Part shown: positions 2,815 through 47,479 of the stretch, piece by piece
How positions within the stretch are numbered: position 1 is the stretch's first letter
How the letters are laid out: the number at the start of each line of letters is the position of its first letter
Sequence record: NC_019406.1
Strand: one strand, 5' to 3'
DNA: 64,000 bases
Notes under the pieces: model-generated
What the model was told of the DNA's origin: nothing
Databases searched by the model: none
Seen by the model: the letters and a program-made list of their open reading frames with translations, nothing else
Made by a program: the position numbers and the translations under genes

Positions 2815-2844
2815 TTGACAGGGCTGGCGCCACATGCCAGTAAT
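2815..2844 (+). promoter_or_regulatory. sigma70-like promoter
   Basis: TTGACA, 17-18 nt spacer, AGTAAT. Confidence 0.6.
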
Positions 2845-2850
2845 CCTGTC

Positions 2851-3060
2851 AGCCAATAGACCCCCTGACGGCGTTCGAGCGATGCGAAGCTCCCGGCATG
2901 CACCGGGCTCCCACAGCATCGTCCCGCCCTCCTGGGGATGCGGCTTCGAGCAGTTTCGTCTGGCCCATCTCACAAAAAGGTGCCCGACGGGGTTGGTGGA
3001 TCACCCGATGCGTACGCGCATCTGAAAACCACCACGAGTTCGCCGGTTCGCCGGCCTTAT
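2851..3060 (+). ncRNA. candidate structured RNA or long leader upstream of the tRNA-Asn-like gene
   Basis: No credible ORF; hairpins CCCGG/CCGGG, GATGCG-TACG-CGCATC, GCCGG-TTCG-CCGGC, GGTGG/CCACC. Confidence 0.5.
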
Positions 3061-3186
3061 ACGGGTGAAGCTCTAGGGTTGTCTCGGTGTAGCGCTGCAC
3101 CGGGCCTTAGGTGGGGAGCGCTTCCCATCATGGAGTGCCGGGTCGTTAACCCGGAGGCGGGGGTTCGAGTCCCTCCACCCGTTCCA
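3061..3186 (+). tRNA. tRNA-Asn(GTT)-like RNA with large D-loop insertion
   Basis: ACGGGTG/CACCCGT, U73, CCA; D-stem GCTC/GAGT; CCGGG-TCGTTAA-CCCGG; canonical T-arm; 126 nt. Confidence 0.75.
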
Positions 3187-3310: not shown

Positions 3311-4072
3311 ATGCGCATCCTGGTCTTGAGCGATCTGCACCTCGAATTTGGAGCCATGGATCGCAATTGGGAGCCGCCCGAATGCGACGCGGTGATCCTG
3401 GCCGGCGACATCGCCACCGGCGTCGTCGGCGTCATGTGGGCCAAGACGATTCGGGCTCCCGTCTTCTACGTGCCGGGCAACCACGAATTCTACGGCAAGC
3501 GGCGCTATCATCGCCACATGGAGAAGCTGCACGCCAAGGCGGAGGACTCCAATGTCGCCGTCATGCAGAACCGCATCATCCAGGGCGAGATCGCCGGCGA
3601 GAAGGTCCGTATCCTGGGCGCCACTATGTGGACCGACTTTGGGCTGCACGGGACCGAGCATCTTTCCCAGGTCGCCGCCCAGCGCGAGATGAACGACTAC
3701 AAGCAGATCAGGCTCGATCACAGCAAGATGCTGACGGCCGACGACACGCGCAGCCTGCATCTGGAATCTCGTTATTGGCTGAGCGAGCAACTGCGCCAGC
3801 CGTTCGACGGCAAGACGATCGTCATCACCCACCACGCCCCGTCGGAGCAGTCAATCCCTCCGCGTTATCGTGGCGATGCGCTGTCGCCGGCCTATGCCGC
3901 GCGCCTGGAGAACCTGATCTGCAACTACGAGCCCACGCTGTGGGTTCACGGGCACATTCACGACAGCCTGGACTACCGCATCTGCGGGACGCGCATCGTC
4001 TGCAACCCACGCGGCTATAAGGGCCACGAACTCAACAAGAACTTCGATCCGCATCTGGTGGTGGAGATTTAA
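3311..4072 (+). CDS. calcineurin-like metallophosphoesterase
   Basis: SDLH, AGD, GNHE, THH, HGHIH motifs; ATG at 3311 after GGAG. Confidence 0.9.
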   Translation: MRILVLSDLHLEFGAMDRNWEPPECDAVILAGDIATGVVGVMWAKTIRAPVFYVPGNHEFYGKRRYHRHMEKLHAKAEDSNVAVMQNRIIQGEIAGEKVRILGATMWTDFGLHGTEHLSQVAAQREMNDYKQIRLDHSKMLTADDTRSLHLESRYWLSEQLRQPFDGKTIVITHHAPSEQSIPPRYRGDALSPAYAARLENLICNYEPTLWVHGHIHDSLDYRICGTRIVCNPRGYKGHELNKNFDPHLVVEI

Positions 4073-6451: not shown

Positions 6452-6526
6452 CCCCATGTAGCTGAGACAGAGTAGCGCCAGAGTGAAATCCTGGAGACGG
6501 AGGTGCGAGCACTCTCGTGGGGGCCA
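6452..6526 (+). tRNA. tRNA-Phe(GAA), atypical
   Basis: CCCCATG/CGTGGGG, CCA; loop GTGAAAT; imperfect T-arm. Confidence 0.7.
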
Positions 6527-7053: not shown

Positions 7054-7142
7054 TCTCATGTGGCGGAACTGGTAAACGCACCGGACTGTTAATCCGGCGT
7101 CTCGCAAGAGACTTGGGGGTTCGAAGCCCTCCGTGAGAGCCA
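7054..7142 (+). tRNA. tRNA-Asn(GTT) with long class II variable arm
   Basis: TCTCATG/CGTGAGA, G73, CCA; CCGGA-CTGTTAA-TCCGG; V-arm GTCTC-GCAA-GAGAC. Confidence 0.85.
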
Positions 7143-7171
7143 ATATGTCGCAGCTTCGGCTGCGGCGAAAT

Positions 7172-7255
7172 GCCCTGGTAACCCGGCGCGCACTACGAAT
7201 GCGCGAGCCGTAGCTGGAGTTGAAAAGGCTGGTTCGAATCCAGCCCAGGGCGCCA
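7172..7255 (+). tRNA. D-armless tRNA-Arg(ACG)-like RNA
   Basis: GCCCTGG/CCAGGGC, G73, CCA; GCGCA-CTACGAA-TGCGC; canonical T-arm; only about 9 nt at the D position. Confidence 0.7.
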
Positions 7256-45046: not shown

Positions 45047-46456
45047 TTAGTCGCGGACACCCTCTGGCAGGAGCGCCTCGCCGATCACGCCGGCGTTCTC
45101 GGCCTCGTGGATGAAGCGCAGGACCGACTCCGAGAAGCCGTCGATGTGCGTCCACTTGCCGTAGCCGATGCCGTTCTTCGCCGAAGCGACGTTGATCACG
45201 TACGAATGCTTGACCTTCGGAGCCGGCATGCTACCGCCGCCCAGCATGTGGTTGACGGTCTTGCCCGAGGCTTGCTCATCGGTGATGATGATCAGGCGAT
45301 CGAACTCGAACTTCGACTGGACGGTGGCGACCGCTTGCACGAGCGCCGTACCGATGTGCGGCTGCGAACGACGGATCGCGTCGACGCCGGCCATGCCCTT
45401 GCGGGCGGGCACTTCCACGATCTTGTTCGAGAAGCTGATCACGCGCAGGTCTTCGGCCGGGATGACCGAGGCTAGGGCGCTAGCCGCGTCGATACGCGTC
45501 AGATCGGACTTGCCCGAGAGCTTCTCGTCCATGGAGCCCGACACGTCCACCATGACCACGGTGCGGCCCGGCAGCTTCGGCATGTCGGCGATCGAGGCGA
45601 TCAGCGCTTCGTCCAGGGCCGGTTCGAACGTCGGCGCCGCACGAGCCGCCGCGATGTAGCGGAACGGCAGGACGCGGTGCGCGCCGCCCTTGCGGGCCTT
45701 GATCGCATCGATCACCAGCTTGCGGTCGACTCCGGCCTGCTCCATGTTGCGCAGGTTGCGCAGCAGGGCGAGGTAGCCGAGCTTTTTGTCTTCCAGCAGA
45801 CGGGTGAACTCCGCCTTCTTGTCGCCGCCGGCCGACAGCGCTACTTCCCAGGTGTCCGGCGACTCCAGCGTCTGATCGACCAGCCCCTTGTACAGGGACT
45901 GACGCTCGTCGTTGGCGGCCTTCGGGTGGCTCAGGAACAGCACGTCGCGCAGACGCACTTCCTTGGCGCGGTCGTACTTGGCGATCTGATACGCGTCGAA
46001 CTTGGCGAACGCCTTGGCGAGGCCGAGCTTCATCTGCTTGGACAGCGGCGCCTTGCGGGCGCCGTCGCGCGGTGGGTTGTACTTCCAGTACAGCGCCACC
46101 AGTTCCGACAGTTCGTCGGCGCGCTGGATCACGCGGGCGATCGTCTCCGAGACGAGGCCGTTGCCCGAGCCGCGCTTGGCCAGGGTGACGAGCAGCAGCA
46201 GGGGGACGTGCCGCAGGTTGGCGACTTCGCGCGCTTCGATGGCGATCTGGGCCAGGGTGTCGACCGGGACCTGCTCAGCGAGCTTGGCGATGCGGGTGCT
46301 GATCTCGACGCCGTCCTCGTAGGCCTCGTTCTCGAACAGCAGGCAGGACATCACCGACCGGCGCAGCGCCTGGACGGCCGTCATGCGGGCTGCGGGAGCG
46401 CCCTCGTGCGTCTTTTCGGTGAAGGTGTTCTTGGTCGAACGGTTGGTCGATGCCAT
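45047..46456 (-). CDS. rsr: Ro60/Rsr ortholog (TROVE + vWA domains)
   Basis: THEG N-terminus, LRRSVMSCLLFE, ALLRNLRN, LPFRY, vWA MIDAS motif DVSGSM, IITDEQ; AGAGGAG RBS. Confidence 0.92.
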   Translation of the reverse strand: MASTNRSTKNTFTEKTHEGAPAARMTAVQALRRSVMSCLLFENEAYEDGVEISTRIAKLAEQVPVDTLAQIAIEAREVANLRHVPLLLLVTLAKRGSGNGLVSETIARVIQRADELSELVALYWKYNPPRDGARKAPLSKQMKLGLAKAFAKFDAYQIAKYDRAKEVRLRDVLFLSHPKAANDERQSLYKGLVDQTLESPDTWEVALSAGGDKKAEFTRLLEDKKLGYLALLRNLRNMEQAGVDRKLVIDAIKARKGGAHRVLPFRYIAAARAAPTFEPALDEALIASIADMPKLPGRTVVMVDVSGSMDEKLSGKSDLTRIDAASALASVIPAEDLRVISFSNKIVEVPARKGMAGVDAIRRSQPHIGTALVQAVATVQSKFEFDRLIIITDEQASGKTVNHMLGGGSMPAPKVKHSYVINVASAKNGIGYGKWTHIDGFSESVLRFIHEAENAGVIGEALLPEGVRD

Positions 46457-46820: not shown

Positions 46821-46964
46821 GAGGTAGAGGGGGAACAGGCGGCAACGCGTTTTTAGCGCTCTACCACTGAGCTACCTCGGGCTTTCGGCCCTCGGGTTGG
46901 ACTCGAACCAACGACCTCTCGATTAACAGTCGAAGAACTCGTCGCCTACGCCACCCTCTACCTC
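46821..46964 (-). ncRNA. Y RNA unit C retaining an Asn anticodon arm
   Basis: Same motif; UUCGA-CUGUUAA-UCGAG, T-arm, closed acceptor, UAGCUCAG D-arm. Confidence 0.8.
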
Positions 46965-46967
46965 AAT

Positions 46968-47105
46968 CGGCGTGTAGGTTGACACATGGGGAACTGGCGC
47001 CGTCGGTTTAGGGGGATCGAACCCCGTGGCGCGGATTTGCAGCCGCACCATTTCAACCAGCGAAGTAGCCGAAAGCTACGCCACCATGTGTCAGCCTACA
47101 CGCCG
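46968..47105 (-). ncRNA. Y RNA unit D with non-permuted Cys-like module
   Basis: Same motif; order D-like loop, GCA anticodon arm, T-arm; no acceptor stem. Confidence 0.72.
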
Positions 47106-47110
47106 ACACC

Positions 47111-47301
47111 CCGATCATAAGGCGGTGGGGGAACAAGCGATCCCACACACGTTTAGGCGCTCTAACCGCTGAGCTACACGCCCGTCATCAGTTCAGGCCG
47201 AAGCCTGGACTGGTGGTGGACGCGGCTGGATTCGAACCAGCGACCTCCCGCTCCAGATGCGAAGTAAGTGACATCTACGCCACCCACCGCCTCGTGATCG
47301 G
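47111..47301 (-). ncRNA. Y RNA unit E with internal CCA
   Basis: Same motif; T-arm, CGCGUCC-A-CCA, UUCG hairpin linker, GGGCGUG, D-arm. Confidence 0.8.
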
Positions 47302-47302
47302 T

Positions 47303-47479
47303 GTCGAGTGTGTTTGGGAGGTCCAGGGGATCAAACGAAAAGGCACTTTTTAATGCCGGTTGTTCTACCACTGAACTACATCCGAGTTGCCCCGGATGGC
47401 GGGATTCGAACCCGCGACCCACTGGTTGATGCGAAGAAATCCTCTTCTACGCCACCTGGACCTTCCAAACACACTCGAC
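47303..47479 (-). ncRNA. Y RNA (YrlA-like) unit F
   Basis: Long terminal stem; T-arm GCGGG-UUCGAAU-CCCGC; acceptor closed by GCAA; D-arm. Confidence 0.82.

Follow-up and report, generated by a model that had tools for sequence, protein, structure and literature searches.

We report a conserved, unannotated RNA gene in giant Caulobacter and Brevundimonas phages, the predicted product of which is shaped like a tRNA and carries two hairpins within its D-loop. Comparison of homologous sequences strongly supports the cloverleaf, the twin hairpins and a selected pairing between the loop of the first hairpin (loop 1) and that of the second (loop 2). The explanation that we favor as a whole, to which we would assign a probability of about one half, is that the gene encodes a tRNA-shaped non-coding RNA that is excised from its transcript, acts as a tRNA mimic and pairs between molecules.

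A tRNA-like element in the CcrColossus tRNA island

The window, i.e., the whole stretch of DNA that was analyzed, comprises 64,000 nucleotides of the genome of Caulobacter phage CcrColossus, and any position in it equals the NC_019406 record position minus 62,000. Inside the tRNA island of this phage, with a tRNA gene array on either side, positions 3061-3186 of the plus strand (126 nt) form a full tRNA cloverleaf that ends in an encoded CCA, and the MFE fold gives the same layout. Its parts are as follows.

3061-3067 (+): 5' strand of the acceptor stem, pairing with 3176-3182 (7 bp, A1:U72; 6 of 7 pairs compensatory across homologues)
3068-3078 (+): A8, A9, 5' strand of the D stem (3070-3073) and start of the D-loop, UAGGG, with U14 and a G18/G19-like GGG (GGG invariant; 8:14 covaries)
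3074-3132 (+): D-loop, 59 nt (sequence reading)
3083-3104 (+): insert hairpin 1, 9 bp, loop AGCGCU at 3091-3096 (MFE folds; a hairpin here in 13/13 homologues, with unrelated sequences)
3110-3129 (+): insert hairpin 2, 8 bp, loop AGCGCU at 3117-3122, complementary to loop 1 (MFE folds; 13/13 homologues)
3133-3136 (+): 3' strand of the D stem, pairing with 3070-3073 (100% of cells paired)
3138-3154 (+): anticodon-like arm, 5-bp stem, loop UCGUUAA at 3143-3149 with C33, G34 U35 U36 and A37 A38 (5 of 5 pairs covary)
3155-3175 (+): variable loop AGGC and T arm (3159-3175; stem 3159-3163 with 3171-3175, loop UUCGAGU; 4 of 5 T-stem pairs covary)
3176-3186 (+): 3' strand of the acceptor stem (3176-3182), discriminator U73 (3183) and encoded CCA (3184-3186), from sequence and homologue comparison

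The acceptor, anticodon (GUU) and T arms and the CCA that a preliminary description of this DNA had placed here were all found in the sequence, as were its two AGCGCU-capped hairpins, which also appear in the MFE folds; the D-loop that it had put at about 58 nt measures 59 nt. Both AGCGCU caps consist of a GCGC tetraloop and its closing A-U. The insert sits just after G18/G19 and so projects from the elbow region. Position 33 is C instead of the universal U, and the U73 and A1:U72 that had been pointed out as non-standard are indeed atypical for tRNA-Asn, in which a G discriminator is expected. The fold energy of the single CcrColossus sequence is unremarkable for its composition (z = -1.24), so that this one fold proves little and the comparison of homologues is decisive.

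The expectation that tRNA scanners would miss the gene proved correct. ARAGORN called 16 other tRNAs in the window, the element not among them, and the best that the Rfam tRNA model (RF00005) gave was an incorrect, truncated alignment scoring 25.4 bits, which is below the threshold of 29. When full-length homologues were submitted to ARAGORN, the element was called correctly in 0/10. No feature is annotated at the element in the GenBank records of CcrColossus and CcrPW, and in the original genome paper only tRNAs were found as functional RNAs by means of Rfam (PMC3556154). A covariance model, by comparison, separated the family from its surroundings. Family members scored 88-121 bits and the divergent L026 scored 41, while ordinary tRNAs in the same loci reached 58.6 bits at most, the best-scoring of them being tRNA-Ile(GAU) at less than half of the family score. 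The model found exactly one copy of the element per genome.

The element lies just 5' of a block of genes for a metallophosphoesterase (MPE), a DUF4170 protein and a peptide deformylase, of which the first is its usual neighbor and is given for context only.

3311-4072 (+): MPE gene (gp102; Pfam Metallophos, phrog_1649)

FkbM-type methyltransferase genes are also found close to the element, and the phage tRNA islands around it contain several further aberrant tRNA-like genes.

Altogether, 13 distinct homologous sequences were assembled in about 12 lineages, from CcrPW, seven Brevundimonas jumbo phages and metagenomic relatives. Over 401 bases around the element, the window is 100% identical to CcrColossus and 94.5% identical to CcrPW. 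By BLAST, the element was located 5' of the MPE gene in the seven Brevundimonas phages, in two sequence types (the Kikimora and Kabachok groups). Pattern scans contributed the metagenome contig L013 and the IMG/VR contig L016, and walking from metagenomic MPE homologues contributed L018, L022, L023, L024, L026, L028 and L031. In the exact-pattern scan of IMG/VR only CcrColossus, CcrPW and L016 were genuine; a further match, L017, was rejected as a chance match inside another sequence. A pattern scan of a genome collection returned only chance matches, in Nostoc, and a search of a plasmid collection returned none.

In an alignment of ten sequences, 98.1% of the 210 stem cells of the cloverleaf are in standard pairs, and 17 of the 21 pairs show changes on both sides; these tool-based counts refer to the cloverleaf only, a MAFFT alignment of the D-loop insert being structurally meaningless. 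When the 3' partners were slid by one to three columns, pairing dropped to 38-54%. None of 500 shuffles matched the cloverleaf on any measure, although shuffle statistics overstate independence because the lineages are related (there are still at least 8 different loop sequences). In L024, for example, the D stem reads GUCC/GGAC instead of GCUC/GAGU. Eleven homologues have A:U as the tertiary 8:14 pair, an inversion of the usual U8:A14, and L024 and L026 have U:A, so that this pair covaries as well. No variation is seen among the 12 core members in the T-loop UUCRAGU or in the GGG that corresponds to G18/G19. Of the 13 homologues, 11 have an encoded CCA, and position 73 is U in 11, A in one and G in one. 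All elements of the tRNA L-shape are kept, i.e., the four stems, the D-loop GG, the T-loop and the covarying 8:14 pair. A recent origin of the body by duplication of a tRNA gene of the same phage was considered and rejected, as global identities are 0.63-0.76 and there is no clear parent.

Co-varying loops of the twin hairpins

The D-loop insert of every member is 52-59 nt long and consists of two hairpins, with nothing else conserved. Across the 13 homologues, hairpin 1 (HP1) has 8-14 bp and is often bulged or interrupted by internal loops, while hairpin 2 (HP2) has 5-8 bp. The two are joined by a linker of 0-3 nt (6 nt in L026), a tail of 1-4 nt leads from hairpin 2 to the D stem, and the spacing of the loop centers is 23-26 nt. 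Hairpin stem sequences are unrelated among lineages, and the stem changes that distinguish CcrPW from CcrColossus are compensatory, two of them in hairpin 1. These two observations indicate that the hairpins themselves are selected. The loops were analyzed sequence by sequence from the MFE hairpins in Python, and are given here as loop 1 / loop 2.

Colossus, PW: AGCGCU / AGCGCU
Kikimora group: CGGCCG / CGGCCG
Kabachok group: CACGCGAA / UUCGCGUG
L013: CGAUCA / UGAUCG
L016, L028: UGCGCA / UGCGCA
L018: GGACGU / ACGUCC
L022: ACGCG / CGCGU
L023: CGCGC / GCGCG
L024: UCGCACG / CGUGCGA
L026: UGUGCG / CGCACA
L031: GACCU / AGGUC

In all 13 sequences, loop 1 can form 5-8 contiguous Watson-Crick pairs with its own loop 2 (duplex energies of -5 to -14 kcal/mol), versus a mean of 3.3 pairs when loop 1 and loop 2 are taken from different lineages. 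When loop 2 was reassigned among the lineages, none of 100,000 permutations reached the observed summed score of 74. The homologue search that had been proposed as a check on the twin loops thus returned twin hairpins with complementary loops in 13/13 cases. Since the complementarity is kept while the sequence turns over, a kissing helix between loop 1 and loop 2 is under selection.

The preliminary description had suggested kissing loops on the grounds that AGCGCU is self-complementary. Kissing as such is borne out by the covariation of loop 1 with loop 2 in 12 lineages, but self-complementarity is not the property that has been conserved. In the Kabachok group, L013, L024, L026 and L031, the complement is either longer than any palindrome or non-palindromic, and three lineages have non-palindromic cores; what is conserved is thus the pairing between the two loops. 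There is nevertheless an excess of palindromic 4-nt cores, which are present in 9/12 lineages (P about 4e-4 even with a null model that is generous). This excess could be due to an added benefit of self-pairing between molecules, or to a mutational bias of the hairpins towards perfect palindromes.

Palindromes also raise the question of a signal at the level of the DNA, with the loops serving as an inverted repeat for a dimeric protein or methyltransferase, or taking part in cruciform or replication structures. Many of the loop cores are indeed palindromes of 4-6 bp (GCGC, GGCC, CGCG, GATC, ACGT), and the FkbM-type methyltransferase genes are nearby. Even so, we consider this extremely improbable, as the stems stay paired by means of G-U wobbles, which are relevant only in RNA, and the hairpins are placed precisely inside a covarying tRNA fold. 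Moreover, the sequence of the site differs in nearly every lineage, so that a co-evolving protein would be needed each time, and in three lineages the cores are non-palindromic.

It had also been proposed that the insert might be an intron-like, removable segment, and a standard tRNA is in fact what remains without it: upon deletion of the insert in silico, ARAGORN called 10/10 bodies as 75-nt tRNAs. Archaeal tRNAs do carry introns at D-loop positions, where, as here, extra sequence interrupts the D-loop of a tRNA gene. Those introns need a bulge-helix-bulge and a splicing endonuclease, however, neither of which is evident for the element; its folds consist of two plain hairpins, neither a bulge-helix-bulge nor particular nucleotides at the boundaries are conserved, and machinery that could carry out splicing of this type is not known from bacteria or phages. 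Group I and group II introns are much larger than the 52-59 nt of the insert (a group I core exceeds 200 nt), which excludes a tRNA bearing a group I intron. The loop complementarity, selected across 12 lineages, points instead to a role in the finished RNA, and even after splicing the anticodon would be variable and U33 not fixed. A mobile segment is likewise difficult to reconcile with a single copy per genome. The proposal thus found no support, and removal of an intron-like or mobile insert to leave a normal 75-nt tRNA seems to us very unlikely.

Whether the two loops would kiss within one molecule or between molecules was considered on structural grounds. When two loops pair over 6-8 bp, the resulting helix is normally stacked between the stems that carry them. 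A kiss stacked in this way would hold the bases of HP1 and HP2 about 50-60 Å apart, which a linker of 0-3 nt could span only under strain, and the short loops would be almost wholly consumed by pairing, leaving little slack. This steric argument is qualitative, and some natural RNAs, such as the lysine riboswitch, form 6-bp kisses inside one molecule; the bulges and internal loops of HP1 could also act as hinges for a bent within-molecule kiss. On balance we lean towards pairing between molecules, at roughly even odds. Closed dimers (head-to-tail, antiparallel) or rings would then arise as loop 1 of each RNA engages loop 2 of its neighbor, as in phi29 pRNA. A constant stacked length of two helical turns, considered for a closed dimer, was dropped because the sums of stem and kiss range over 17-26 bp.

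Probable processing from an mRNA leader and the question of decoding

Three further features precede the element in CcrColossus.

2815-2846 (+): promoter-like motif, TTGACA and TGCCAGTAATC separated by about 16-17 nt; from its sequence, the probable start of the transcription unit
2986-3036 (+): structured leader motif with invariant GGGGUU, GCCC and AAAA, a P1 helix and a variable hairpin (RNAalifold)
3042-3060 (+): UUCG-capped hairpin (3042-3055) and 5' leader CUUAU ending at U(-1) (sequence)

The promoter-like motif, which lies about 215 nt 5' of the 5' end of the element in CcrColossus, also occurs upstream in CcrPW, Kabachok, L018, L019/L020, L022 and L023, in the last of these directly 5' of the tRNA-like gene. 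L013 has its own TTGACA box directly 5' of the element, with a different second element. The conserved upstream motif was not called in a generic sigma-70 scan. In the leader motif, RNAalifold identified 14 pairs, eight of them compensatory, across 10 lineages, and an Rfam search with this motif returned no match. As it occurs without the tRNA-like element in L019-L021 and is absent from L013 and L023, it is a separate module.

The MPE gene is found 0-600 nt 3' of the element in CcrColossus, CcrPW, 7/7 Brevundimonas phages, L016, L018, L022-L024, L026, L028 and L031, an association that is biased in that most homologues were located via the adjoining phosphoesterase gene. In L013 the element is kept and the MPE gene is absent. 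The converse holds in L019-L021, close MPE relatives in which a small ORF takes the place of the element in the same operon. The MPE protein gave no sequence match to solved structures, so that its substrate offers no clue.

An ORF starts 9-25 nt after the CCA in most members (range 9-125 nt). On the 5' side, 9 of 12 homologues have U at position -1, and six have a (Y)UUAU leader; U(-1) is the context preferred by bacterial RNase P. We suggest that the RNA is probably excised from an mRNA leader, RNase P cutting the MPE operon transcript at the U(-1) site and 3' tRNA processing freeing the other end. The same arrangement might instead have a function in cis, with a tRNA-shaped punctuation mark recruiting RNase P and 3' processing, or shielding a 5' end, and the released RNA having no job of its own. 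The phosphoesterase message on its 3' side would in this way have its 5' end, its stability or its translation determined. The position of the element between conserved promoter-like and leader motifs and a gene, the ORF start just after the CCA and the conserved association with the phosphoesterase operon would all fit. Processing would not require the UAA of the anticodon loop, the encoded CCA or the co-evolving loop hairpins, however. L019-L021 run the same operon without the element, and L013 has the element and its own promoter-like box but no phosphoesterase. We thus regard a purely cis-acting leader signal as quite unlikely.

The Asn-like identity given in the preliminary description is not conserved among the orthologues. 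Nine of the 12 core members have the anticodon GUU, two have GCU and one has AAU, and at position 33 five have C, four U, two G and one A. Over the whole anticodon loop the consensus is Y32-N33-R34-N35-U36-A37-A38, in which U36-A37-A38 is invariant in the core members. The GCU forms have a 4-nt variable loop without a long arm, which bacterial SerRS needs. Furthermore, CcrColossus, CcrPW, L013 and L016 already possess a separate tRNA-Asn(GUU) gene. The changing anticodon and the free position 33 argue for a non-decoding mimic rather than for tRNA-Asn.

A working elongator tRNA, specific for Asn in the Caulobacter phages and reassigned elsewhere, has nevertheless to be weighed against this; its appendage and altered loop would then shield it from host defenses or mark it for phage enzymes. 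Much of the body would be in keeping with such a role, given that the full cloverleaf, T-loop, GG and encoded CCA are under strong purifying selection within a phage tRNA island, that GUU is present in 9/12 core members and that U36-A37-A38 suits an ANN-decoding tRNA. Four of the 12 core members keep U33, and C33 does not wholly prevent a tRNA from decoding; escape from anticodon nucleases is known for phage tRNAs in which the anticodon loop is altered. We nonetheless judge this possibility unlikely. In clear orthologues the anticodon shifts to GCU or AAU without identity changes, the GCU forms lacking the arm that SerRS requires, and U33 is unconstrained. The discriminator is U and not the G of the Asn type, four of the genomes have a tRNA-Asn(GUU) besides, and it is not apparent what the selected pairing of the two loops would contribute to decoding.

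Our best guess, as far as the sequences allow, is therefore that the RNA has a decoy or scaffold role. As a tRNA mimic, decoy or scaffold for some tRNA-binding factor, it would have to resemble a tRNA, and in particular one with an ANN-reading anticodon loop, but would have no need to decode. A more specific version can be put forward only tentatively and as an unlikely one: self-assembly into closed dimers or rings through pairing between molecules would yield a multivalent tRNA mimic with several tRNA-shaped domains on display, and a host factor directed at tRNAs would be baited by the fixed U36-A37-A38 together with the free position 33. An anti-phage anticodon nuclease or a tRNA-modifying enzyme could be such a target, with the bait being uncleavable or unusable.

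Relation to known RNAs and implications

The element shares with canonical phage tRNAs (RF00005) the full cloverleaf, the T-loop, the D-loop GG, the encoded CCA and the position in a tRNA island. It differs from them in having a D-loop of 52-59 nt in place of 7-11 nt, an unconserved U33 and anticodon and, in most members, an inverted 8:14 pair. Like the tRNA-like domain of tmRNA and the tRNA-like structures at viral 3' ends, which bear CCA ends and are handled by tRNA enzymes, it imitates a tRNA; those RNAs, however, have no normal anticodon arm or owe their fold to pseudoknots, and none has a twin-hairpin module in the D-loop. A tmRNA was rejected as the identity of the element, since ARAGORN reports no tmRNA and a full anticodon arm is present.

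CcrColossus has been cited as encoding Ro60 and Y RNA-like RNAs (PMC12135203), and we located Ro60 at 45047-46456 and three YrlA-like matches at 46836-47447. YrlA and other Y RNAs resemble the element in being tRNA-like, non-decoding RNAs encoded by phages and bacteria. In YrlA, the 5' and 3' ends form a Ro60-binding stem at the place of the tRNA anticodon arm, and a closed stem-loop replaces the acceptor stem (PMC4201824). In the element, by contrast, the acceptor end is open and bears CCA, the anticodon arm is a genuine one, and the Rfam search gave no match to YrlA (RF02553). That it might be the known CcrColossus Y RNA was thus rejected, as it is built differently and lies 42 kb from Ro60.

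The loops of pRNAs differ between related phages yet stay complementary, and the element similarly shows two mutually complementary, covarying loops in 13/13 sequences. According to one study, the CE-loop and D-loop of phi29 pRNA are believed to mediate multimerization, and fragments bearing them form a heterodimer (PMC2241910). In contrast to pRNA, the element is built on a tRNA scaffold and lies in a tRNA island rather than beside packaging genes, and its mode of pairing is one that we infer here. With regard to homology with pRNA, there was no Rfam match and no sequence or structural homology, so that the element could at most function in the manner of pRNA and does not belong to its family.

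In retroviruses, the HIV-1 DIS and the twin GACG-tetraloop hairpins of MoMuLV have GC-rich, often palindromic loops that kiss between molecules. Palindromic loop cores are likewise enriched in the element (9/12 lineages). The retroviral hairpins pair a loop with itself, however, whereas the complementarity common to all members of the present family is that between loop 1 and loop 2; they also belong to another biological setting.

Our literature searches did not turn up any tRNA, or mimic of one, that bears kissing hairpins or a structured insert in the D-loop. A two-hairpin D-loop module with co-evolving loops would thus be a new feature among tRNA-like RNAs, in that we did not find it described. 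Its presence means that a conserved RNA gene in well-studied phages escapes both the standard tRNA finders and Rfam, and the covariance model provides a clean route to further members.

Earlier tRNA mimics, i.e., tmRNA, Y RNAs and viral tRNA-like ends, each revealed new biology. If pairing between molecules is true, the element would be the second natural phage RNA multimer to be joined hand in hand, after phi29 pRNA, and would be so on a tRNA scaffold. If the pairing is within one molecule, it would represent a new remodeling of the tRNA elbow, a surface that is read by RNase P, the ribosome and T-boxes. Given their aberrant tRNA-like genes, these phages may manipulate host tRNA biology in ways that go beyond the usual explanation of codon supply.

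A structured leader before the metallophosphoesterase operon

Upstream of the operon encoding the metallophosphoesterase (MPE), DUF4170 and peptide deformylase, we found a conserved structured leader motif, copies of which also occur in homologous loci.

Copies of the leader motif
CcrColossus window, 2986-3036 (+)
L003 (homologous locus), 1377-1436
L004 (Kabachok-group Brevundimonas phage), 1367-1434
L016 (IMG/VR contig), 716-778
Metagenomic relatives: L018, 1169-1232; L022, 1262-1325; L024, 1288-1353; L031, 626-686
Close MPE relatives: L019, 1178-1240; L021, 1082-1147

In the motif, a P1 helix is accompanied by a variable hairpin; GGGGUU, GCCC and AAAA are all invariant, and compensatory changes occur at 8 of its 14 pairs. 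A GGGU/GCCC pseudoknot is possible. No match to it was returned by Rfam. Given that it is found both with and without the tRNA-like element, the leader may be an independent cis-regulatory RNA.

In the Kabachok-group phages, the annotated 888-nt MPE reading frame (L004, 1577-2464; L007-L010, 790-1677) starts only ~20 nt past the CCA end of the tRNA-like RNA and ~110 nt upstream of the point where homology to other MPEs begins; this start codon is probably mis-assigned. Caulobacter phage Cr30 (L012) carries an MPE homologue (40% identity) two genes away from an annotated RNA ligase (MPE homologue and RNA ligase locus, 892-1701 and 1906-2598), a proximity that hints weakly at a role for the MPE family in RNA end-healing or repair.

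Ro60 and YrlA-like RNAs

CcrColossus has been said to encode Ro60 and Y RNA-like RNAs (PMC12135203), and the following adjoining loci agree with this.

45047-46456 (-), Ro60 gene (TROVE and vWA)
46836-47447 (-), three tandem YrlA-like tRNA-mimic RNAs, below the Rfam threshold (30-42 bits versus 69 for the family)

The presence of three tandem copies is striking.

Unusual tRNA genes

Several aberrant tRNA-like genes in the window were overlooked or inconsistently called by annotation (557-632, 635-722, 725-815, 6452-6526 and 7159-7255). Two are Ser-like RNAs with an abnormal T-loop and a long variable arm, one is a weak Rfam tRNA match (30.8 bits), and a 97-nt 'tRNA-Arg(ACG)' apparently has no D arm. 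Similar elements are carried by L013, a metagenome contig, and by L023, a metagenomic relative. Among the tRNA-Leu genes of the L023 array, ARAGORN called a suppressor-type tRNA (200-284) with anticodon UUA, which reads the UAA stop codon; this slot is unmatched in the Colossus array, and the gene is a hint that stop codons may be suppressed or recoded in this uncultured phage.

In bacteria, a long variable arm is normally confined to Leu, Ser and Tyr tRNAs. Here, genes for tRNA-Lys (CUU or UUU) and tRNA-Asn (GUU), 86-93 nt long, also have such an arm.

Long-arm tRNA-Lys and tRNA-Asn genes
CcrColossus window, 19-108 and 7054-7142
L013, 1019-1104
L016, 4928-5013
L023, 7-99

This shape is kept across these phages, and it poses the question of which synthetase charges these tRNAs.
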